64,000 nucleotides of DNA. It comes from Anaeramoeba ignava BMAN. Lineage: Eukaryota; Protista; Anaeramoebae. Numbering within the stretch: the first letter of the stretch is position 1; each line of letters opens with the position of its first letter. A model generated the notes under the pieces. The model did no database searches. It was not told where the DNA came from and saw only the letters and a program-made list of their open reading frames with translations. Positions 21,697 to 51,540 of this stretch are shown piece after piece. The DNA is taken from assembly GCA_028826165.1 (NCBI GenBank), contig JAPDFW010000093.1, forward strand, positions 1-64,000, written 5' to 3'. Made by a program: the position numbers and the translations under genes.

Positions 21697-24600
21697 TTAA
21701 TTATTTTTGGAAGTAACAATTCTTAAACGAGCTTGTTCTCTAATTTGATTTTTAATTAATGTAACAAGTTCTAATTTTTGAGCAACACAATCACAAACAC
21801 AAGTAAATTCATTTGGAAATTTAAAAGGAACAACTTGGAATAATAACTCTAAATTTTTTTCCGATTTTAATTTTAATTTTTATTTTAAATTTTAATTTTA
21901 AATTGTAAATCAATTTTAATTTCAAATTGTAAATAAATTCAAATTCTAAATTAATTTTAATTTTAAATTCAAATTTTAAATCAATTTTAATTTTAGTTGT
22001 AAATAAATTCAAATTTTAATTTTAATTTTAATTTTAATTTTATATTTTAATTTTATATTTTAATTTCAATTTTAATTTTAATTTTAATTTTAATTATAAA
22101 TAAATTCAAATTATAAATGAATTTACCATCAGAAGGAAATTCTCTAATAATAGCACGATCTAAAAGAAAAATTCCAATCATTTTTGATCTTTCTTTTTTA
22201 ATTGGTTTCGCAACCAAAATCATATCTGAAAACAACCAAAAATGAATATCCTTTGCAGTATTATCCTGAACAATTTGCAAATCAGAAGCTTCACGAATTA
22301 ATTTTCTAGCGGGATCAACAAAACCAAGTTCTTTAGGAAGACCTGAAAGAACGGATTCAATTCGGGCAAGAGTTTTTTCATTTTCGGAACTTTTCTTGAT
22401 ATCATTAACATAAGTAGCAACTTCAACAAGTTGCGAATAAGCAAGCATGATTTCTTGATAGGCGGAATGGGAACGCGCTGTGCTGCGCAGAAGCTCCTTA
22501 AAAAGAAGCGGATATTTAGTGATTCTTTGGATGGGTTTGATCAGGAAATCAAAAAGATCAAGACCTTTGCATTCGGGAAGATTTTCGCGCAAGGAATTCA
22601 AGTGTTTTGCACATGTTTCGTTGGCAATGCATTCCTTTGTACGCGCATCTGATGCCGTTTGATTCAAACAATAATTGGTATAAATTCTAAATTTGCTTGC
22701 GAAATTTGAAAAAATCGGACCGACCCGAATTTGCGAATAATTTTCATTTGATTTTTTAAATGCAGAATTTAACGTCTCCATTAATTGTTTATTTGTTTCG
22801 TAAATCTCGTCAATATTCGAGAAAATAACAGCAACATCTTCTTGTGTGATCAGGTTTTCCTTCAGCATTCCATCGCGGAAATGCGTGCGGATTGTTTCGA
22901 TATCGCGAATGTATTCTTCTTCCGTTTTCATGATTTCTGTTATGATATTCGTGACTCTTTCTGTTTTTGTTTTTTCGGGACTGGGGATCTCTTCGAGCAT
23001 CAACGGCGAAAGTTTTTCTGCCTCAAGCTCTTTCGCGGTGAAGTTGTATTCGGGCTCTTTGAATTCAGGGACAAATGCGCTGTTGATCAAGTTGTCCCAA
23101 ACAAGGAATTTTGTTGGCGCATCTTCGAAAAGAAACATTTCTCTTGATGGATCGTCTTCGAAGTAAATTTCGATTGCGTTTTTGACGACCAATTGCGAGT
23201 CGTCATCGTCTTTGTTTGAGTTATTTGGGATTTGGGCTATTTTGGAGTTGTTTTGGTTTTGGTTCGTTTTTGGATTGTTTGAATTGCGATAAAGATCCTC
23301 ATCATTATCAGGTATATTTCGAACAACACATGTTGAATATTCGACAAGAACTCTGAATTTCAATTTTCCTTTCTTGCCAATTTTCGCGGTGATAATCTCG
23401 TCGTTAAACAAGAAAAACCGTTCGTTTACGATTGTTGCTTGTTGTTGAGCGTTCATAAAAACGGTTTGAAGAATGCCTTCTGTAAGCAGCTCTCTTCCTG
23501 GATGAACAATGGAAATATCATCCAATCCATCGATTGAGTTCTCGATCTCTGCCAGACGCGCTTGGCCGTCATAGCGCCTGATCTGCTGCTGCGCAGTCGT
23601 CTTCTCCATGATCATCTCAAAGGATTCATACACCTGATAAATGCGTGCATACTCTCTGCGAGTGTGATCAAGAAGCATTAAAAGCGCCTTGAGATGGCGT
23701 AAATAACGCGCAATTTGTTTCAATGGGATAATCAAGAAATCTAGAAATTCAACGCCGCTTGCGCGTTTTTTGCAGCGTTGAAGAAGATCCCCAAATCCAT
23801 CGCGATCCGAGTGGAATAGAAACATGGAATACATTGCGTTGTCGAAATTTTCGGCCCAATCTTTAAATAATTCCGCTCGGATTTGCGAGATTGTTTTGTC
23901 AACATTTACCCAGTTGTTTTGTGCCGTTGAATCCTTTTGAAGCAGTGATAAAAAATCTGCGCTGTGTTTCAACAACAAATCAATATTCCCAAAAAGTGTT
24001 TCGCAGTCAAATTGCTTTAAAATTCCTGATCCACTTACAGGATCCACATAATGTTCCTTGAAAAGCTTTAAATCCGATTGGAAAACAGTCTCCATCTCAA
24101 GCATCAATTGGAGACTCTCGTTTTTGTCCTTCGGCGCAATTTCGGGCTCTTCTTGTCGCTGTTTTTCTTTCTTTCTTTGAAGCTCCTCTTTTCGTCGTTG
24201 TCGCTCCTCTTTGATTTGCTGTTCTTGCTCTCTTCGCGTTTGTTTTTCGCGCATTTTTCGTTCCCGTTTTTCTTGTTTTTCCTTTTCCCGAGTTTCTCTT
24301 TCTTTTTCTTTCTCTTTTTCTTTAATTTCTCTTTCTTTTTCTTTAATTTCTCTTTCTTTCTCTTTTTCTTTTTCTTTAATTTCTCTTTCTTTCTCTTTTT
24401 CTTTTTCTCGAATTTCTCTTTCTTTCTCTCTAATTTCTCTTTCTTTTTCTTTCTCTTTTTCTTTAATTTCTCTTTCTTTTTCTCTCTCCTTCTGTTTCTC
24501 CTTTTCCCGAATCTCTCTTTCCTTCTGCTTCTTCTGTTTCTCTTGTTCCTTTAACTGCTTTTCTCGCGCCTTTTCTTTCTTTTGATAAAACTGCTTTTTT

Positions 24601-26240
24601 CGATCAACCGTTTTTGCCTGAACAGAAGTAGGACGTGAAAAACGGTGAATTTTTCTTTTGGAAAATTTCCATTTCTTTTTTTTCTTGATTTTCGGTTTCT
24701 GATATGTTTCTGTATTGCTATCATTCACACTGAACGCGCGCACACGCTTCGAAACAGAAATACCGCCCGATATTTTCTCTTTCGGTTTCGAAGGTTTCGG
24801 CGTGTCCTTCGGCTTTGGCGCCTTGATTTTCTTTGCTTTCAACGGCTTATCCTTGACAACCTTTGCCTTGAGAGGTTTTGCTTTAGGAATTTTGAATTTT
24901 TTTGCTTTCATTGGCTTTTCCTTCACAACCTTTGCCTTGAGAGGTTTATCTTTTACAGGCTTGAATTTCTTAGTCTTTGATTTTTCAGGTTTGACTTTTG
25001 TAATTTTTGGTTTTTCAAACTTGGACTGGTCAACTTTTTCTTTATCGGTTTTTTTTCCGGTAATTGATCCAAAACTGAAGAATTTTTTACTTGGTTTTGC
25101 AGGCTCTTCTTTGGCCGTAGGTTTCAATACAGTAACACTAGGCTCAGTTTTTTGGAATGTAGGCCGAAGAACACGGACAGTGGGGTCTTGCCGTTGGAAA
25201 GAATAGGTGTCTCTCGACTCATAGGGAGACACAGAAAGCGTGACAGATTTACTGAGAGGAGTTGCATTAATAACAGTATTATTGCTTGTAAAATTTGTGT
25301 TTGAAGTCTTGTTAATTTGGGGTGCAAACGACTTCGAAAAGCTATTTGGCGGTGTAACACTGCGCGGTTTTCTTGAATCAATATCGTCGTTAGAGGTTTT
25401 TGCGATGGGGGTGTTTGTAGTTATAGAGTGCCATAAGGGGATATCAGGAAGTGTGACAGGTTTTTTGGGCGGAACCGTTCTTTTTTGGAAACTGAACTTT
25501 GGACCGGTGTAATTTGGAGGAAGAGGCGGTCGTTCTGGTCGCGGCGGTTTGGGACTCTCGCTTGTGTTACCCCATGATGTTTGCGGCTTTGGAAATTGAG
25601 GAGGTGCTGGTTTGGAAATATTTTTCTTTTCGGGAAATTTGACGTTTGAAACTTGAACATGAACCACCAATCTAGTTCCTAAAGTAGGTGGTTTTTTTGG
25701 GTAATTAGGCTGGGTAAATGAGAAATGACGATGTGGTGTTGGGAAGGAAACGCCTGCTCTTTGGGTTGGACTACTTATGTTGACAACTGTGTTTGAATTG
25801 CTTGTTATATTTGACGTGTTTGCTGTCACAACGCTTTTATTTCCGCTCGTCAATGGAGACGTTATGTTTGTTTTTGCCGTTGGAAAAGCAAATGTGGGAC
25901 TTGTGCTCTTTTTGTTTGTTGGCGATGTCCCGAATCTTGTTGTATATTGTGTCGTTGTTCGTTCGGTTGTTTGTGGTTTTGCTTTGGAGAACGTTATTGA
26001 TTTTGCTCCTTGTTCTGTTGGTAGTGAGTTCAATCGCGCAAGTGGTCTTTGGTTTGGTAACGGCGGTAGATTTCTTCGTGTTCCTATCCCACTTGTTTGT
26101 TGTTTCCGTTCTTCATTTGTTGTTGTTTCTTTCTTTCCACTTGAAAATGTTAATTTATTTGGTCGGATTACTGCTCTTGCTCCGTTGAAATTCTTTTTGT
26201 TCGTGTTTTGTGTTGTTTTTGGTGATGTTATTTGTGACAT
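21697..26240 (-). CDS. RhoGEF with two tandem DH-PH cassettes, Pro/Ser/Thr- and Lys-rich N-terminus and KE coiled coil; exons 26240-22127 and 21848-21697
   Basis: DH motifs EMETVFQSDL...FLIIPLKQIARY and EIMKTEEEYIRDI...FLIKPIQRITKYPLLFKELL; PH motifs RFFLFNDEII and HFWLFSDMILVAK. The final exon joins in phase. Confidence 0.93.
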
Positions 26241-37899: not shown

Positions 37900-40800
37900 T
37901 TAAAAAAATTTAAAATGACCAGCAGAAATAATTTTTCCACCATAAGAAGATAAGAAATTAACTGTAATAATTTTCCCACGGATTGGGTTCTGAAAATAAA
38001 AATGCAAATGAGTACCATTTTGACACTTAGGAATAACAAATTTACCAATCATCAATTGAGCAACAAATTCACCCTTTTTATTCGTGGAAACCATAGTCAT
38101 AATTATATTCTTTGGCTGAGAACAAAACCCCTCTGATCCATGAGAAACAATATACACAAATCCAGACACAATTTCATTGTTAATTGTAAGCTTTAATACA
38201 TGTGTCTCAGTTTCATATATAGATGAAGATGGAATAATGTAATTTTGATGAAGTTTGAAATTTTTTGTATTCAATTTTTCATTTAAATTGACTGGTTTAC
38301 TGATTGTTTCTGTTATAGGTAATCTCTGTTTTTCAAAATCAGGAATTCCATGAATAACAATTCGACCCAAATGAATTCTGGGTAATGAAAATTTGCGTTT
38401 TGGAAAAAGAATATCAGAATTTTTTGAATTTTGGTTTTGATTTTGATTTTGATTTTCATTTTGATTTTGATTTTGATTTTGATTTTGATTTTGATTTTGA
38501 TTTTGATTTTATATTTTGATTTATATTTTGATTTTGATTTTGATTTTGATTTTCATTTTGAATTTCATTTTGAATTTCATTTTCATTTTGATTTTGATTT
38601 TGATTTTGATTTTGATTTTGATTTTGATTTTGATTTTCATTTTCAATTTGATTTTGATTTGGAATTGTAATTATTAAAGATAAAATTTGGCAAGTTTTAA
38701 TTTCTGATAATTTAAATTTTAAAACAGAAAAGGGTGAAATTCCAATATTATTTTTCTCATCTAACCGAATAAGATTTTTGCGAAGATCCCATTCACCAAT
38801 TGGCTCTATTGTTTGTGGATATTTTGTTCCACCTTGAATTTCAATAATTGGGGCATCCTTTTGAGAATAACCAATTGAATCAACAAAAAGTGAAATTTCA
38901 TGAATTTCTGCTTGACAACTTAAAGAGATCATAATTTCCACACTTTGAACTCCTTTTGGCGCAAACCAAAATCGCTGATTGATTAACCGAGAGCTCAGAA
39001 GTACTGATTCTACAGGCACAGAGTTGAAATCTGTTGGTACTTTCCTTAGAATTCCTGCAAAAGGAAGTCGAGAAACTTCAACTAAATTTTCCGTTTTTAT
39101 TTTTTCTTCGTTTTTTATGTTTTCGTTATTGCTTTCTATTGTATCTCCCTTTATTTCTTGTTTATCTTGTTTCTGGTCTTTTCCTTTTGAAAGGTTTTCT
39201 ATCCATTGTATTTTTTCTAAGAAGTAGATTTGTGATAAAATTGGAATCAAAGAGTGTTTTGTTTGAGGTTCATTTTCTTCAATTTCTTTTTCTTGTGAGT
39301 TTAATTCGTTTATTGCATCAATTTTATTTTGTTGTTTTATGATCTTTTCTCCACATTTCTTGCAAACAGAAGAGGGTTCTGTCCACATATATTCAATAAT
39401 CTAAATGAAAAAAATTTTTGACAGTTTTTTTTTCGAAATTTTTTTTTTAGGAATTTAAATTTAAATTTAAATTTAATTAATTGAATGAATAATAAACTTA
39501 TTAGAAATTATTTTCATCTGTAGATATGAAACGGCACGAACTTCTACATTTTTGTACCATGCCGTTCAAAGTATCTACAGATAATAAAATACCTTCATTT
39601 TTGATGGATGCATGCAAGAAGAACAAAATTTTTTAAAGCAATAAAAACATTGATGTTTTTTTAGCCTTAACGAAGCACCACATTCTGGATTTGAGCAAGT
39701 ATTTGTGGAGTATTTCTTGCTCTTCATAATTTGCTTGATGATTTTTTCCTCTCGCTTAAAGATGAAGCGTTCTGGGTTATAATCATGAAGTTCCTTTTTG
39801 AGTTTTTGGAAAGTGTAATCTCTCTCTGCAGCAGTCAATCCCAATTTGAGTCTTTTTGCTTCTAGCTTGAGCGTGTCAATGAGTTCGATTGTTCTTTTTT
39901 GTGATTGAACAGTAGTCAGAATTTTCTTCACATATTTTTCATAGCGTTTAGTCATGATCACAATTTCATTCTCTTCATTATCCGCATTAATTGGAGGTGT
40001 TTGTGGCAGCGTTAGTAGATTCTCTCTTGAGCTTTCAACAGGCGTGTTCTCATCATTTCTGTTTGTTTCATCATCACCATCAAATTCCTTGTTTTCGTTA
40101 AACTGTTCGTGATCCGATTTGCTGATGTTTGATTTACTTTCGATTTTTTGTGTGTGATCCGATTTTTTTGGATCGGATTTTTTGGATGAACTTTTAGATA
40201 ATCTGTCAATATAATCATCCACAATAGTCAACGGACGAAGCAGAAGAATATAATTTTGGAATTCATGCTTGAGTTGTTTTTGAGCAATTCTGAAGAAGGG
40301 GTTGAGTCTCAGATTTGTTTCTTCGTGCTCGATGCGCTTGTCAATTCCTGTTGTAAATAAAGTTTGAGCTGGAATTTCCATAACAGATTCATTCAAAAAG
40401 GTTTGTTGAGGAGAATGTGTTTTGGGGTCTTTTAATTTGCGAGTTAAAACTTGTTTATTTTGCAAATTTTTCAAAGGTGTGATCTGCGAAATTGATCGTA
40501 ATTGAAGTGGAATAACGGATTGGGGGATAATTTTGTTTTCTTCATTAAAATGAATAAGAGTTCCTAAAATATCTATTTTCCCGAATGCAATTTGTTTTTT
40601 AAGTAAGTCAGAAGGAAGGAAATTATAAATGGAAATCAAAACAAAACGAGCTGGAGTTTCATCAATTTCTATATTGCTTTCAAAATTGTAAGTTTCCTGG
40701 AAGTTTTGTTGCATTCGAGCTATTTCCGAACGTGTGAAACGATAGTAAAGTTGTGTTCCATTCGGACATGCTGGTATTTGGAGATTGTGAAATAGTATTC

Positions 40801-43800
40801 TCATGTTATCGATGTAATCTCCAACAAAAACATCAACAACTAAAGGAATTGGTTGATGTTTTCCTCCTGTTTGTGTTGTGAAACATATTTCTTTAACTTT
40901 ACATGGCTGGCGAAGACAGAGATATATCTTAAATTTTTTGGATAATAATTAAATTAAATAAATTTTTTGGATAATTATTAGAATAATTATTAGAATAATT
41001 AAATAATTAGAATAATTAGAATAATTATTAAAATTAAATAATTAAATAATTAAATAAATTTTTTGAATAATTAAATAATTAAATAAATTTTTTGGATAAT
41101 TTTTTGGATAATTATTAAAATAAATTTTTGAATAATTATTAGAATAATTATTAAAATTAAATAATTAAATAATTATTAGAATAATTAAATAATTTGAATA
41201 ATTAAATAAATTTTTAAATAAATTTTTTGGATAATTTTTGAATAATCTTTAAAATTGATTAAAATCTTTAAAATTGAATAAATCTCTAAAATTATTAAAA
41301 TAATTGAATAAATTCTTGTTAATAGATTCCAAATACTTGAATCACAGGCTGCTTTAAAGAACTAATCCAACAAACATTTGGATCATTGAAAATTCTTTCA
41401 GGATATTCATATTCTTTATTTTCTGGAAGAATCTCTTCATAGCTAACATCTTTAAAACACCAAGAAGGAAATGAACTCACAAGAGATAAATTATGATGAG
41501 GATCCTCTTCAATAACCTTCTTCTGTTGAATTCCTAAAAACACTTCAATTTGCATTTGACGACCTTTATCTTCACTTTTTTTTGAATATCTTTTTCTTAT
41601 CAATTTCGAAATAGCACTTGTTTTGTTTCCTGTATACTTCATTAAAACTTGGTTCTTTTTTGGAACCTTATTTGAATAAATAAATGAATGAGCTTCATTA
41701 CTAAGAGAAAACATAATCCCAAGATTATGCAAAATTTCTGGATCTAATAATTCCAAAATTTCTTGAAATGAAAATTCAAATCCTCTCCAACTTTCAGATA
41801 TTTTATCCATAATATTTTGAGGGAAAACTTGAACAATTCGAAGCATTTCAACAACAATTTGGATTGAAGAAAAAAACCCAGCAAGATTTGTGATTTCAAG
41901 TGAATCAAAACAACTGAAAAACATGATTCCTTTCTGTCTTGAAAGAGATTCAAACAACGCCCAGTGACCATCTGGACATACAACTGGACCCAATGAAAAA
42001 GTCTCGAAAACTAAATCCATTGGTTGATTTAATTGTGAAGTAAATTCTTCTGTTAATTCTTCAAGGCGAATCACACCATGATTCAATCCATGCTTGATAA
42101 TATCATGTTTAATAAAAGCCCAAAAATCAACAATACATTGATTTTGAGAAATAAATCTATCTTTCCAATCAAAATTAACAAAAGAAAGACTAACATCAAG
42201 TAATTTTTCAACATGAGCATGAGAATGCTCAAAATCTTCCATAATTTCAATTTCCTTATTTCCTTGTGCTTGTTTCATTAAACTTAGGCACGAAATGTTG
42301 TCTGTATTGTGCCGTTGAGAAATTCGAGAATAAAATTTGTCAGAAAAGCTCCATCGATTAAGGTTGTTTTCTTGATCTTGTTCTCCATTTGTTTCTGTTC
42401 TTGGAGCATTACAATAAATTGGTGCTGTTCCTCGAATCCAAATAAAAGAAAACCATTTTATTATGTTCTTATTTTTATCCATGGATATAAATTCATTTTC
42501 AATTTCATTTGCCGAACCTTTTTATTTGTTTAAATTTCATTTTAAATTTAAATAATCAATATAAATATCTTTCAGTTTTGAATTTTAAATTTTGAATAAT
42601 AATAAATATCTTTCAATTTTGAATAATAATAAATATCTTTCAATTTTGAATAATAATCAATATCTTTCAATTTTTGAATTTTGAATTTTGAGTAATAATA
42701 ATAATAAATATCTTTCAATTTTGAATTTAAATCTTTAAATTTTGAATAATAATAAATATCTTTCAATTTTGAATAATAATCAATATCTTTCAATTTTGAA
42801 TTTTAATTTTGAATAATAATAATAATAATAATAAATATCTTTCAATCCATTTTAATTTTGAGTAATAATAAATATCTTTCAATTTTGAATTTAAATTTTG
42901 AATAATAATAATAAATATCTTTCAATTTTGAATAATAATAATAATAAATATCTTTCAATCCATTTTAATTTTAAATAATAATAAATATAAATATCTTTCA
43001 ATCCATTTTAATTTTGAGTAATAATGAATATCTTTCAATCCATTTTAATTTTGAATAATAATGAATATCTTTCAATTTTGAATTTAAATTTTGAATAATA
43101 ATGAATATAAATATCTTTCAATTCTTCATTTAAATTTTGAATAATAATAATATCTTTCAATTTTGAATTTTAATTTTGAATAATAATAAATATCTTTCAA
43201 TTCTTTCAATTCTTCATTTTAATTTTGAATTTTAAATTATTACTAACCTCCTTTATCATTTAAACCTTTAGAATATGACATAATTGCTGGATTTAATGTA
43301 CATTTTCTTGTTAGAAGAATCATTTTGGTTTCTTGATTTTGACTTAATTTTAATTTTTGAATTTAATTTTTGAATTTAATTTTAATTTTGATTTTTGAAT
43401 TTAATTTTTGATTTAGATTTTGGATTTGAATTTAATTTTTAATTTTAATTTTAATTTTGATTTAAATTTTTATTTTGATTATTTTGATTTTGATTATTTT
43501 GATTTTGATTATTTTGATTTTAATTATTTTGATTTTGATTTTGATTATTTAGATTTATATTTAGATTTATATTAATATTTATATTTAGATTTAGATTTTG
43601 ATTTTGAATTTAATTTTGATTTTGATTTTTGATTTTGATTTTGATTTTGATTTTGATTTTGATTTTGATTATTTTGATTTTGATTTTGATTTTGATTTTG
43701 AATTTGATTTTGATTTTGATTTTGATTTTGATTTTGATTTTGATTTTGATTTTGATTTTGATTTTGATTTTGATTTTAATTTTGATTTTGATTTTGATTT

Positions 43801-45272: not shown

Positions 45273-48200
45273 TTAATTGATTAAAGTGTTAAGATCCATT
45301 GTTTCTAAATAAAGTCGAATATCTTCAAGAAATCTTGTTGCATGTGAACCGTTATGCATTCGATGATCAAAAACAAGATTTATATCCAAAACATTGCAAG
45401 GAATAATCATTCCATCAACAAATCTTGGGAGATTCATTATACTACCAACTCCAATCATTCCTAATTGACCAGGAATAACAAAAGGTGTTCCTGTTTTCAC
45501 TTTTGTTGCGAATCCAACATTTGTGACTGTAAGTGTTGCTCCTTGCAAATCATCGAGTTTAATCTCATTGTTTCGAACTTTTTGTGAAAGTGAATTAACT
45601 TTCTCACAAAATTGAATGAAATTGAGTTTGTTTGCATTTCGGACAACTGGTGTATAAAGATCTTCATTGAGTTGATTAATTGCGGCAAATCCCAAATTAA
45701 CATTTTTTGAAACTTTGAGTTTTTTTCCATCTTTGTCAAGAATTCCTCTAAATGTTGAATTATGATCAGTTTGCATTGCTTTATTAACTGCCCAAAGAAT
45801 AATATCAGTCACTGTTACATGAACATGATATTTTTCTTCAATCTTCTTTTTTAATTGATTGCGTTGCTTCTCAATTTTTGTCATGTTGACTTCTGTTTGA
45901 ATATTCACTGTTGGTGTTTCAAGTTGTGATTTAAGAGCCAATGCTCCGACTTGGAGTTGTGGTTTTGAAAGGATAACTTCTTGATATTCAGGCTCTTTTT
46001 GTGAGATTGATTGGCTTTCTTGTTGATTGACTTTTTCATTTGATTTTTCAGAAATCTTATCTTCACCAGTTAATGATTTATCAGAAACTTCAATTCGAAT
46101 CACTGGAACTTCTACTGGCACAATTTCTCCTTCATTAACAAGTATTTGGCGGACTCTTCCGTTAACAGGACTTGTTATTGTGAATGAACCTTTATTTGCT
46201 TCACAATCTGCAAGTGGCTGATCAATTTTCACAATATCATCTGGTTTCACTAAAAACTTGACAATTGTTGCATCTTCATCTGAGGGTGAATTGCGAGGAA
46301 CAACAACAGGGAAAAGTTGCTTATTCTCTTCTTTGAGTCCTTTTTCTGGTTCTGTTGGTTTTGCTGGTTTTTCTTTCGGGATATTTTCTAAAAATGTGTT
46401 TGACACATGAATTTCAAAAACTGGTTTATTAACAAGAACAATATCTCCTTCTTTGGCAAGAATTCCAACAATTTCTCCATCATAAGGAGATTCCAATTCA
46501 AAGCTTCCTTTACTTGCTTCGAATTCTGCAATGATTGCGCCTTGTTTGACATGATCTCCAATTTTTGCATTAAGTTTTATAAGTGTTGAATCTTGATCTG
46601 ATGGTGAAACTTGAGGAAGTGTGATATGAAGGATTTGATATTCTCCTGGAAGTTTTTCTTTTTTTATCTCTTCAATTTGTTTTGGTTTTTCTTCTTTGAT
46701 CTCTTCGATTTTCTTTGGTTTTTCAACTTTTGCTGATATTAGATTATCTGCAAACAAATCTCCTTTTAAATTGCTTGTTTTGTATTCTTGGAGTTTTACA
46801 AGGTTTTGAACTACACTTTCAACACTTGGAAGAATTGCTTGATTTAAATCATATTGGAATGGATTGAAATCATCTGTTTTTGTATTTCTTAATGGAGGAG
46901 CTTTTAAGTATTGGTGTCCTTGAGTAATCATTTCTGAAACGATCTCTCCAGCCATTCCGCAAGTTTTTGCATCTTCATGAACAACAAGAAGTTTTCCTGT
47001 TTTCTTAATTGAATTCAACACTGTGCGTTCATCCCAAGGAACAATAGTTCTTAAATCAATCACTTCCGCATTAATTCCGTACTGTTCTTTTGCTATTTTA
47101 GCTGCTTGTGTGCAAATTTTCACTGTATTTCCATAGGTTACAATTGTTACATCTTCTCCTGGTTTAACAATTCTTGCAACTCCAAATGGAATCATACAAT
47201 CTTTATCTGGTGTACTTATTGTGTCAGTTGATGAATGAAGTAAAACTTTTGGATACAAATATATAACAGGACGTTTTGATCTTAATGCAAATCTAAGAAG
47301 GCCTGCAGCATCAGCAGCGTTACTTGGGATAACAATATTAAATCCAGGGTTGTGCTAAAAATTTTGATAAAGAATATTTATTTAAATTAAATATTTATAT
47401 TGAATATTTATATTAGATAATATTTAAATTAAATAATATTTATATTAAATTATATTTAAATTGAATAATATTTATATTAAATATTTATATTAAATAATAT
47501 TTATATTAAATAATATTTATATTAAATAATATTTATATTAAATAATATTTATATTGAATATTTATATTAAATAATATTTATATTAAATAATATTTATATT
47601 AAATAATATTTATATTAAATATTTATATTGAATAATATTTATATTGAATAATATTTATATTGAATAATATTTATATTGAATAATATTTAAATTGAATATT
47701 TATATTAAATATTTATATTAAATATTTATATTAAATAATATTTATATTAAATAATATTTATATTAAATATTTAAATTGAATAATATTTATATTGAATATT
47801 TATATTAAATATTAAATATTTATATTAGATAATATTTATATTGAATATTTATATTAGATAATATTTATATTGGATAATATTTATATTGGATAATATTTAT
47901 ATTAAATAATATTTATATTAAATATTTATATTGGATAATAATATTTAAATTATATTTATATTGGATAATATTTATATTTAAATAATATTTATATTGAATT
48001 AAATACTGCAAATTGAGCTTCACTCGTTGCTGCATGATATGCTCCAACTCCAGGTGTATATGCTCCATATGATGCCATTAATACCTAATTTATTGATTCC
48101 AAATTTGTTATTTTGATTTTGATTTTCATTAATCAATTAACTTACAACAGGTGTTGTATATTGTCCATTAGATCTCCAATGCATCATTCCAATTTGTGTC

Positions 48201-51200
48201 CATAATTGATTTAATGCTGGATGTACCTTTTTAATTAGTTAATTAATTAATTAGTTAATTTATTTATTTATTAATTAGTTAATTAATTTATTTATTTACA
48301 AAATCTATAAATTGAAGAAATGCAACTTGTGGATCTCCTTCTAATAATGCTCGACCTGCAGCAGTTCCAACTATTGTAGCTTCAGCAAGTGGAGAATTAG
48401 TTACTCTTTTTGGAAATCGAGTTGATAATCCTTTTGTAACTGAAAAAACTTCACCTTTCTATTTTTGATTAATTTTTGATTAATTTTTGATTAATTTTTG
48501 ATTAATTTTTGATTAATTTTTGATTAATTTTTGATTAATTTTTAAATTTTTGATTAATTTTTGATTAATTTTTGATTAATTTTTGATTAATTTTTGATGA
48601 GAATTTTTTAAATTTTTGATTTTTTACTGGATCTTCAATATCTTCTCCATAAACTGTAATTTTAGAATTCCTTTCCATTTCTTGTTCAATTGTTTTTGAA
48701 ATGCATTGTGCCATTGTTAATCCACCTTCTTTTTTAGGAAGTCTTTTTGGACGAGAACAAGTTTCATAATTTGGTAAATAAATAGGAAGTGGACTATAAG
48801 GACTACCAACTTCTTTTGGATTTGGTGCTTGTTTAGCTCTCAAAACAGCTTGATCAATAAGGGATTGAATTTCTTTTTTCATTTTGCCAAGTTCTTCTCG
48901 ACTGATTACATTCTCCGAAATAAGTTTGTCTTCATAATTTTTAACAGGATCTCTTTTTGCTATTTTATCAATATCTTCTTGTGATAAATATACTCTTTGA
49001 TCATCACTACTTGAATGACTAGATAAACGAACTAAATGTGCAAGAATTATTGCTGGTTGATTTTTCTCTCTTGCTTTTGCTACGGCTTTTACTGTAGATT
49101 CATATACTTTTTCTGGATCTGTCCCATCAATTTCATACATTTCACATCCCATAAACCATTTACTTCCATCATCTTTAGAAACTATCGAATTTGGAAAATC
49201 CCAAAAAGTTTTTCCTTTTGTTCTTGTTGAAATTCCAAGTTCATTATCTTCAACTAAGAAAATAACTGGAAGTTGCTTATCGACTGCTTGAGCAACAGAT
49301 TCCTAAATTTTTGGATTTTGATTTTTATTTTAGAATTTGATTTTGATTTTGATTTTAATTTTGATTTTGATTTTAATTTTGATTTTAATTTTGAATTTGA
49401 TTTTGATTTTGATTTTAATTTTGATTTTGATTTTGATTTTGATTTTGATTTTGATTTTAATTTTGATTTTGATTTTGATTTTGATTTTGATTTTGATTTT
49501 AATTTTGATTTTTATATTGATTTTGATTTTTATATTGATTTTGATTTTGATTTTGATTCTGAATTTTATTTTGATTTTGATTTTGATTTTAATTTTAATT
49601 TTAATTTTGATTTTAATTTTAATTTTAATTTTAATTTTAATTTTGATTTTGATTTTTGATTTTTGAGAAAACAAACCATAAATTCTCCTTGCCTTGTTGA
49701 AGCATCTCCAACTCCTGTAATAACAACTTGTTTATTACCAAAATCTTTTAAATGCATAGCCATTCCAACAGCTTGAAGTAAATTAGCTGCAACAGTACTT
49801 CCTCCAGCAACAATATGAAGTTCTTTATTATTATAATGATTTGGCATTTGTCTTCCACCAGAAGGTCCATTTGCTTTTCCAAAAAAATCCAAAAAGAAAT
49901 GATCTAAAGGAACTCCTCTTGTAATAATAATTGGTTTATCCTTTTTTAATTTTAATTTTAATTTTAATTTTAATATTAATATTAATTTTAATATTTATAT
50001 TGATATTTATATTTATATTTATATTTATTTATATTGATATTTATATTGATATTGATATTTATATTTATATTTATATTGATATTGATATTTATATTGATAT
50101 TTATATTTATATTGATATTGATATTTATATTTATATTTATATTTATATTTATATTTATATTTATATTTATATTTATATTTATATTTATATTTATATTGAT
50201 ATATAAATATTTATATTTATATTTATATTTATATTTATATTTATATTTATATTTATATTTATATTTATATTTATATTTATATTTATATTTTATATTTATA
50301 TTTGTATTTATATTTATATTTATATTTATATTTATATTTATATTTATATTTATATTTTATATTTATATTTGTATTTATATTTGTATTTATATTTATATTG
50401 ATATTGATATTGATTTTTATATTTATATTTATATTTATATTTATTTTTATATTTATATTTATATTTATATTTATAATTATATTTTATATTTGATATTTTA
50501 TATTGATATTTATATTTATATTGATATTTATATTGATATTTATATTTATATTTATATTTATATTTATATTTATATTTATATTTATATTTATATTGATATT
50601 TATATTTATATTTATATTTATATTGATATTTATATTGATATTGATATTTATATTGATATTTATATTTATATTTATATTTATATTTATATTTATATTTATA
50701 TTGATATTGATATTGATTTTGATATTGATATTGATATTGATGTTATTTATATTTATATTTAGATTTATATTTATATTGATATTTATATTTATATTAATTT
50801 ATATTTATATTTTTATATTTATATTGATATTTTATATTGATATTTTATATTTATATTATATTTATATTTATTTTATATTTATATTTATATTTATATTTAT
50901 ATTGATATTGATATTTATATTTATATTGATATTTATATTTATATTTATATTGATATTTATATTTATATTGATGTTATATTGATTTTTATATTTATATTTA
51001 TATTTATATTTATATTTATATTGATTTTGATATTGATATTGATATTTATATTTATATTTATATTTATATTTATATTTATATTGATATTTATATTTATATT
51101 GATATTTATATTGATATTGATATTGATATTGATATTGATATTGATATTGATATTTATATTTATATTTATATTTATATTTATATTTATATTTATATTTATA

Positions 51201-51540
51201 TTTATATTTATATTTATATTTATATTTATATTTATATTTATATTGATTTTGATATTGATTTTACTCGATAATATGGATGAATCCAATCTTCTTTTCCAAT
51301 TGCAAATGATGTGCCTATCATTCCTTCATGTCCCATACAACTCATTTGAAAAACACCTTGTCCTCGTCTTTTTAAAGCTTCTTCCTTTGTTTCTAATAGT
51401 CTTGATTTTTCCATTGCTTCTAAAAATTTTAATTTGAGTGATTTTGGAATTGAATTTCCAAAAAGTCTCAAAAATTCATTTTTAGGAAAGATTATTTGTG
51501 ATTTTGATTTTAATTTTAATTGTAAATTTAAATTGAGCAT
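45273..51540 (-). CDS. Single-chain 2-oxoacid dehydrogenase: presequence + E1alpha + E1beta + 2 lipoyl domains + E2 acyltransferase, about 1,204 aa; exons 51540-51265, 49940-49677, 49302-48628, 48458-48300, 48226-48146, 48084-48007, 47354-45273
   Basis: E1alpha: [18 protein letters not shown], ThDP motif [10 protein letters not shown]...[15 protein letters not shown]1beta: [43 protein letters not shown]. Lipoyl: EASKG and EANKG. E2: [16 protein letters not shown]. The alpha/beta and beta/lipoyl/E2 junctions lie inside uninterrupted exons. Confidence 0.93.
49941..51264. repeat. 1.3 kb intron of (TTTATA/TTGATA)n hexamer repeat
   Basis: Directly visible; source of the [12 protein letters not shown] ORFs. 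Confidence 0.93.

Follow-up and report, generated by a model that had tools for sequence, protein, structure and literature searches.

Anaeramoeba ignava BMAN carries a gene in which the E1alpha, E1beta and E2 components of a 2-oxoacid dehydrogenase are joined in one polypeptide. It lies on the minus strand at 45273-51540 of the window, that is, of the whole stretch of 64,000 nucleotides analysed here (assembly GCA_028826165.1, contig JAPDFW010000093.1, positions 1 to 64,000 of the forward strand), and the encoded chain has, in this order, a leader, E1alpha, E1beta, two lipoyl domains and an E2 core. Here it is proposed, with a probability of roughly 0.6, that the product is a three-in-one 2-oxoacid dehydrogenase of the branched-chain (BCKDH) type, obtained by lateral transfer and at work in the A. 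ignava hydrogenosome. Eukaryotic pyruvate dehydrogenase (PDH) and BCKDH have separate E1alpha, E1beta and E2 genes, and hydrogenosome-type anaerobes usually use ferredoxin oxidoreductases instead.

The fused gene is real. It has 7 exons (3,615 nt, 1,204 aa, a single stop), six introns that are all GT-AG and all in phase 0 (1324, 374, 169, 73, 61 and 652 nt), and an in-frame TGA immediately 5' of the ATG. The spliced product, for which the initial annotation had given about 1,204 aa from seven in-frame exons using the letters alone, agrees residue for residue with the A. ignava database protein KAJ5070608.1 (P0001), automatically named 2-oxoisovalerate dehydrogenase beta-related protein. The EukProt transcriptome ORF c20464_g1_i1 is complete and also has 1,204 aa; its splice junctions are identical, and its sole differences are S829P and P882S. 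A single mRNA thus spans all domains. The alpha/beta junction (aa 344-374, 48813-48721) is within exon 3 and the beta/lipoyl/E2 junctions are all within the 693 codons of exon 7, so the fusion points are, as had been claimed, independent of splicing. The features are as follows.

51457..51540, minus strand: N-terminal leader, aa 1-28, with 5 K/R and 1 E, ending in FLRLFG; probable hydrogenosomal presequence.
51265..51540, minus strand: exon 1, aa 1-92, leader and E1alpha start.
49941..51264, minus strand: intron 1, 1,324 nt, 5% GC simple repeats, phase 0.
49677..49940, minus strand: exon 2, aa 93-180, E1alpha GRQMPxH loop and GDA, the start of the thiamine diphosphate (ThDP)/Mg motif.
49303..49676, minus strand: intron 2, 374 nt, phase 0.
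48628..49302, minus strand: exon 3, aa 181-405, E1alpha end (D199-N200; R272, H276, S277), alpha-beta linker and E1beta start.
48300..48458, minus strand: exon 4, aa 406-458, E1beta including the ThDP-activating Glu431.
48146..48226, minus strand: exon 5, aa 459-485, E1beta.
48007..48084, minus strand: exon 6, aa 486-511, E1beta including the active-site His502.
47355..48006, minus strand: intron 6, 652 nt, 4% GC repeats, phase 0.
45273..47354, minus strand: exon 7, aa 512-1204 and stop, one open frame with the E1beta C-domain, linker, 2 lipoyl domains and E2 core.
46410..46628, minus strand: lipoyl domain 1, aa 754-826, putative lipoyl Lys794 in EASKG; an additional copy relative to the bacterial relatives.
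46089..46310, minus strand: lipoyl domain 2, aa 860-933, putative lipoyl Lys899 in EANKG, as in the bacterial family.
45294..45962, minus strand: E2 acyltransferase core, aa 976-1198, Thr1122 and DHRMHNG with His1175/Asn1179; no peripheral subunit-binding domain (PSBD) ahead of it.
45276..45311, minus strand: non-canonical E2 C-terminal helix with the family pattern LExMDLxxLL; no Pro and no clustered hydrophobic knob.

Introns 1, 2 and 6 (window 47355-51264) consist of AT-rich short tandem repeats.

A Pfam scan by exon recovered every domain that the initial annotation had named, in the predicted order: E1_dh in exons 1-3 (weak in exon 1), Transket_pyr in exons 4 and 7, and Transketolase_C, two Biotin_lipoyl and 2-oxoacid_dh in exon 7, while exons 5 and 6 (27 and 26 aa) had no Pfam match when scanned alone. 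The ThDP/Mg motif GD(x)24-28N of E1alpha (G170-D171...D199-N200) and the E1beta pair of activating Glu E431 and H502 are present and invariant in the fusion family, and E1alpha R272-H276-S277 is conserved there. The E2 core matches PF00198 (E 5e-45), and its T1122 and DHRMHNG, like the putative lipoyl lysines, are kept across the family. Lipoylation is predicted at K794 and K899, which fall in the two PF00364 matches and align with the lipoyl lysines of PDB E2s, the motif being ExxKG in place of DKA. The AlphaFold monomer folds E1alpha, E1beta, lipoyl 2 and E2 confidently (mean pLDDT 82); lipoyl 1 is not resolved in this full model because the alignment has no cover there. A single-sequence structure prediction of the lipoyl pair reached pLDDT 33, and a lipoyl tree had too few columns to show the two amoebal copies as sisters.

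The protein departs from canonical PDH, BCKDH and 2-oxoglutarate dehydrogenase, which have separate E1 and E2 chains and a PSBD in E2. The E3-binding PSBD (PF02817) had no match in P0001 (the amoebal protein), P0002 or P0092. The idea of a self-contained enzyme therefore holds for the decarboxylase and acyltransferase, the motifs of which are intact, and fails for the oxidation step: with no E3 and no E3-binding domain on the chain, the lipoyl groups have to be oxidised by a free E3 or by some different agent.

The closest relatives are bacterial. About 45 protein clusters of 1,000-1,120 aa have E1alpha-E1beta-lipoyl-E2 with one lipoyl domain and a lipoyl-E2 linker of 13-35 aa; those with a taxon name are from metagenome-assembled genomes (MAGs) of Planctomycetota (examples are MCK6474836.1, HLX59663.1 and MBI3829460.1) and from one Leptospirales MAG. 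The family is narrow, being carried by 7 of the 301 Planctomycetota genomes searched; its bacterial proteins come from MAGs and metagenomes only, under automatic names, and the bacterial gene has no conserved neighbours or operon context that would indicate a substrate. Identity between the amoeba and the relatives compared is ~45-51% in E1alpha, 55-60% in E1beta, 40-53% in the lipoyl domain and 39-50% in E2. Like the Planctomycetota fusions (40-60% identity per domain), the amoebal protein has the same domain order, EANKG, DHRxxNG, no PSBD and the same E2 tail, and its E1 and E2 parts alike place it by ancestry in their clade; unlike them, it has a leader, six introns and a second lipoyl domain, the last found in the amoeba only among the fusion proteins compared.

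In the E1 tree the amoeba is within the fusion clade (support 100/96 and 99/99) and the outgroups are all bacterial: the sister lineage is formed by bacterial E1-lipoyl-FabH fusions, and further out come an E1-lipoyl-E2 family of Verrucomicrobiota and simple alpha-beta fusions. The E2 tree is concordant (95/98, 100/99). No other eukaryotic copy, including in A. flamelloides, was recognisable in the homologue and full HMMER searches, in which most matches carry no taxon name. The architecture search showed, against the initial annotation, that the fusion is shared with Planctomycetota MAGs and was not made in this eukaryote; a eukaryotic origin was rejected, since the same order occurs in the bacterial clusters and both trees place the amoeba with them. 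Judged by these sequences, the fused gene is very probably of bacterial origin. The shared architecture, the two trees and the exclusively bacterial surrounding lineages suggest that the fusion was acquired whole by lateral transfer, and the introns, leader and second lipoyl domain would be additions made after it.

Further observations concern these bacteria. In the Leptospirales MAG (L032, JAIBBM010000023.1) the fusion (53% to P0002) is accompanied by canonical SucA/SucB and another E2, and a second lateral transfer may have brought it there. 2-Oxoacid:ferredoxin oxidoreductases occur in each of the nine planctomycete carriers examined, as does an unlinked E3 or E3-like gene, and in five of the nine the fusion is the sole full E2 found. 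The sister clade (P0038, P0161, P0240 and ~95 other matches, in taxa such as Pontiella, Fangia, Cysteiniphilum, Xenococcus and Pirellulaceae) has E1alpha-E1beta-lipoyl with a FabH/KAS III domain replacing E2, extending in P0240 into KR and ACP domains; this arrangement suggests that a lipoyl-bound acyl primer may be passed directly to the condensing enzyme. The second E1alpha-E1beta-lipoyl-E2 family (P0092, P0164, P0168, P0177 and relatives) is mostly from Verrucomicrobiota, including Ca. Udaeobacter, and has the canonical ETDKA lipoyl motif, no PSBD, a DHRxxNG site and just 28% E2 identity to the amoeba.

Regarding the substrate, the E1alpha motifs GRQMPxH and HSSSDD agree with BCKDH from human and Thermus, unlike the Geobacillus PDH loop. 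The best PDB and fold match of both E1beta and the bacterial-relative E1alpha is Thermus BCKDH (1um9), the E1beta of which is the top fold match overall. The amoebal protein shares with human and Thermus BCKDH the alpha/beta E1 fold, GRQMPxH, the HSxxDD loop and the E1beta Glu and His, with BCKDH His291/Ser292 corresponding to amoebal His276/Ser277. Unlike BCKDH, in which E1alpha, E1beta and E2 are separate chains with a PSBD and a 24-mer core, it is one chain without PSBD and of bacterial origin. Because the E1alpha motifs are of the BCKDH type, the best candidates for the substrate are branched-chain 2-oxoacids or 2-oxobutyrate, and a BCKDH-type range is favoured here by the motifs, which support the E1 part of the earlier proposal of branched-chain 2-oxoacids.

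The protein is likely to be organellar, as was first suggested by its leader. The leader end FLRLFG resembles those of A. ignava propionyl-CoA carboxylase (PCC) alpha (FIRSFA), LplA (IIRNFH) and a pyruvate:ferredoxin oxidoreductase (PFO; FIRKLA), and canonical targeting sequences have been reported in Anaeramoebae (PMC11316075).

A non-canonical assembly, which had been predicted from the two-fold symmetry of E1 and the three-fold symmetry of E2, appears likely; the mismatch itself has a solved precedent. Actinobacterial OdhA/KGD unites the catalytic domains of E1 and E2 in one chain and forms an 800 kDa homohexamer that solves the dimer-by-trimer problem (PMC10415282). Unlike the amoebal protein, it is an E2-E1o fusion of opposite order with a homodimeric 2-oxoglutarate-type E1, and it has no lipoyl domain and borrows that of AceF; the amoebal protein lies outside this family (PRK12270 96 bits vs a cut-off of 878), and the E2 similarity is remote. 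A LBD-PS-E2-E1 fusion, predicted in silico only in some Actinobacteria (10.1101/2020.07.24.212647), likewise has lipoyl, E2 and E1 in cis, but with an E1o type, the reverse order and the PSBD kept. The best PDB sequence match of the amoebal E2 core is the corynebacterial trimeric E2p AceF (6zzi), which also has an altered amphipathic C-terminal helix, and in AceF the altered tail prevents trimer-trimer contact (10.1101/2020.07.24.212647). AceF differs in its PSBD and in a Phe-containing 3-residue insertion, where the amoeba has Leu (the helix position is putative). The fusion family E2 tail is LExMDLxxLL vs the Pro/Val-led hydrophobic knob that ends four stand-alone E2s taken from two of the same genomes. 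Because this tail appears to lack the usual trimer-trimer knob, and because obligate E1 dimers must be combined with E2 trimers as in OdhA, a hexamer is, by analogy, the more plausible assembly.

The A. ignava genome encodes dihydrolipoamide dehydrogenase (E3), LplA, BCAT and a PCC-type carboxylase alpha subunit, with NuoF at two loci. The fusion is the sole E1_dh and 2-oxoacid_dh locus found (intron-rich genes may be missed). There are ~8 PFO loci (C60, C66, C133, C123, C115, C93, C67 and C35), several of them encoding a clear N-terminal leader; C115 and C93 score identically, perhaps as duplicates of each other. The POR_N matches inspected are all PFO-type, so no alternative of the VOR/IOR kind was seen. 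A candidate acyl-CoA dehydrogenase (PF00441) was not found in the whole A. ignava genome; two PCC/MCC-type carboxylase alpha subunits and BCAT are present despite this. An ~18 kb region (C131:26626-44500) has two tandem NADH-oxidase-like flavoproteins and a PCC-type alpha subunit, with the apparent end of glycine-cleavage P2 directly upstream of the latter. Anaeramoebae hydrogenosomes reportedly produce H2, acetate and propionate (PMC11550330), and acetate:succinate CoA-transferase (ASCT) and succinyl-CoA synthetase (SCS) have been described in A. pumila (10.64898/2026.04.11.717937).

With these components, the enzyme could work as follows. The leader would be cleaved upon import and LplA would lipoylate K794/K899. 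Two fused alpha-beta units would form the usual two-active-site E1, which would decarboxylate branched-chain 2-oxoacids and/or 2-oxobutyrate and acylate the tethered lipoyl arm, and the E2 trimer would transfer the acyl group to CoA, in a closed, OdhA-like hexamer of ~0.8 MDa with three E1 dimers and two E2 trimers. Reoxidation of the arm would fall to an E3 that is not tethered, probably the L protein of glycine cleavage, with NADH passed on to NuoEF/hydrogenase. Since no acyl-CoA dehydrogenase was found, the acyl-CoAs would probably leave as short acids via ASCT/SCS, with ATP gain. The view that hydrogenosome-type anaerobes usually lack such enzymes has to be softened: NAD-linked 2-oxoacid dehydrogenases (PDH) are known in ciliate hydrogenosomes (PMC6993867), so an NAD-linked enzyme in this organelle is unusual, not unique.

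Several observations weigh against this reading. The amoebal E1alpha scores alike against Geobacillus PDH (112 bits) and human BCKDH (111 bits); no NCBIfam equivalog scored above its cut-off, and near the active site the protein departs from its family (AYHAAT for PWHSQT, VAGGST for VSLSSP). Canonical branched-chain amino acid catabolism looks incomplete, given the missing acyl-CoA dehydrogenase. The N-termini of some bacterial relatives are as long as the amoebal leader, and the genome paper mentions the gene neither in its text nor in its list of hydrogenosomal lateral gene transfers (PMC11550330, Suppl. Data 5B). Finally, a grouping of the bacterial sequences into a single clade was not rejected by the approximately unbiased (AU) test (p=0.28), so nested and sister positions of the amoeba are not separated; in either position, every lineage placed around it is bacterial.

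The same enzyme might instead have pyruvate as its physiological substrate and be an oxygen-tolerant, NAD-linked back-up for the oxygen-sensitive PFOs, which would fit the equal E1alpha score, the retention of PDH in ciliate hydrogenosomes and the five of nine bacterial carriers, all with ferredoxin oxidoreductases, in which no other full E2 was found. It is nevertheless unlikely: GRQMPxH, present in 45 of the 46 fusion family members, matches BCKDH and not the Geobacillus PDH loop, two genomes (G226 and G287) carry the fusion plus three stand-alone E2s, and the host already has its PFO loci.

In bacteria and in Trichomonas, OsmC/Ohr is known to be reduced in a lipoyl-dependent manner. A redox-defence role, in which lipoyl arms charged with electrons from 2-oxoacid oxidation or from E3 working in reverse would mainly feed an OsmC/Ohr-type peroxidase, with the second lipoyl domain raising capacity, could account for the lack of an E3 tether, for the lipoyl duplication seen solely in the amoeba and for the hydrogenosomal OsmC of A. 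ignava. It is improbable, as the H protein of the glycine-cleavage system is available as an alternative lipoyl donor and the fully conserved E1 and E2 sites favour acyl-CoA production. Equally improbable is a biosynthetic, possibly cytosolic role, providing branched acyl-CoA primers for lipids instead of ATP: the sister clade has FabH/KAS III instead of E2, once inside a polyketide synthase, and no acyl-CoA dehydrogenase for catabolism was found, but against it stands the likeness of the leader to organellar ones, of which LplA too has one. An artefact (a bacterial contig, a misassembly or adjacent genes merged by the gene model), suggested by the bacterial nearest relatives, was rejected as having a negligible chance in view of the six spliceosomal introns with host-type repeats, a third-position GC content of 0.14 inside the host range, the eukaryotic neighbours RhoGEF, SAC9 and WD40, the junctions inside exons and the complete transcriptome ORF.

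Among these neighbours are, at 22053-26240 and 38456-42482 of the window, a 1,395-aa ORF that encodes a pair of RhoGEF domains and a phosphoinositide phosphatase of SAC9-like type spread over several ORFs.

A literature search gave no description of this architecture, amoebal or bacterial, although an earlier mention in Stairs et al. 2021 (Curr Biol) is possible. Apparently the three-in-one architecture is undescribed, and neither the bacterial family nor the FabH-fused clade that is its sister seems to have been studied. Taken beyond the BCKDH-type hydrogenosomal enzyme proposed here, and with the odds about even, there may be a family of minimal 2-oxoacid dehydrogenases with E1alpha, E1beta, lipoyl arm and E2 on one chain, closing into a hexamer that has neither a large core nor a tethered E3. 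A eukaryote would have acquired one of its members, in the sole eukaryotic case found, and with it a metamonad hydrogenosome would have gained an NAD-linked way of turning amino acids into acyl-CoA, ATP and H2. The enzyme adds a likely pathway that the Anaeramoeba hydrogenosome descriptions consulted do not contain. If the proposal is true, a textbook multi-megadalton complex exists here in a natural form encoded by one gene, with E1:E2 fixed at 1:1 and the swinging arm in cis; this form would offer a direct test of why such complexes normally need large cores and a tethered E3, and a fused gene of this kind could move most of a complex laterally in a single step.

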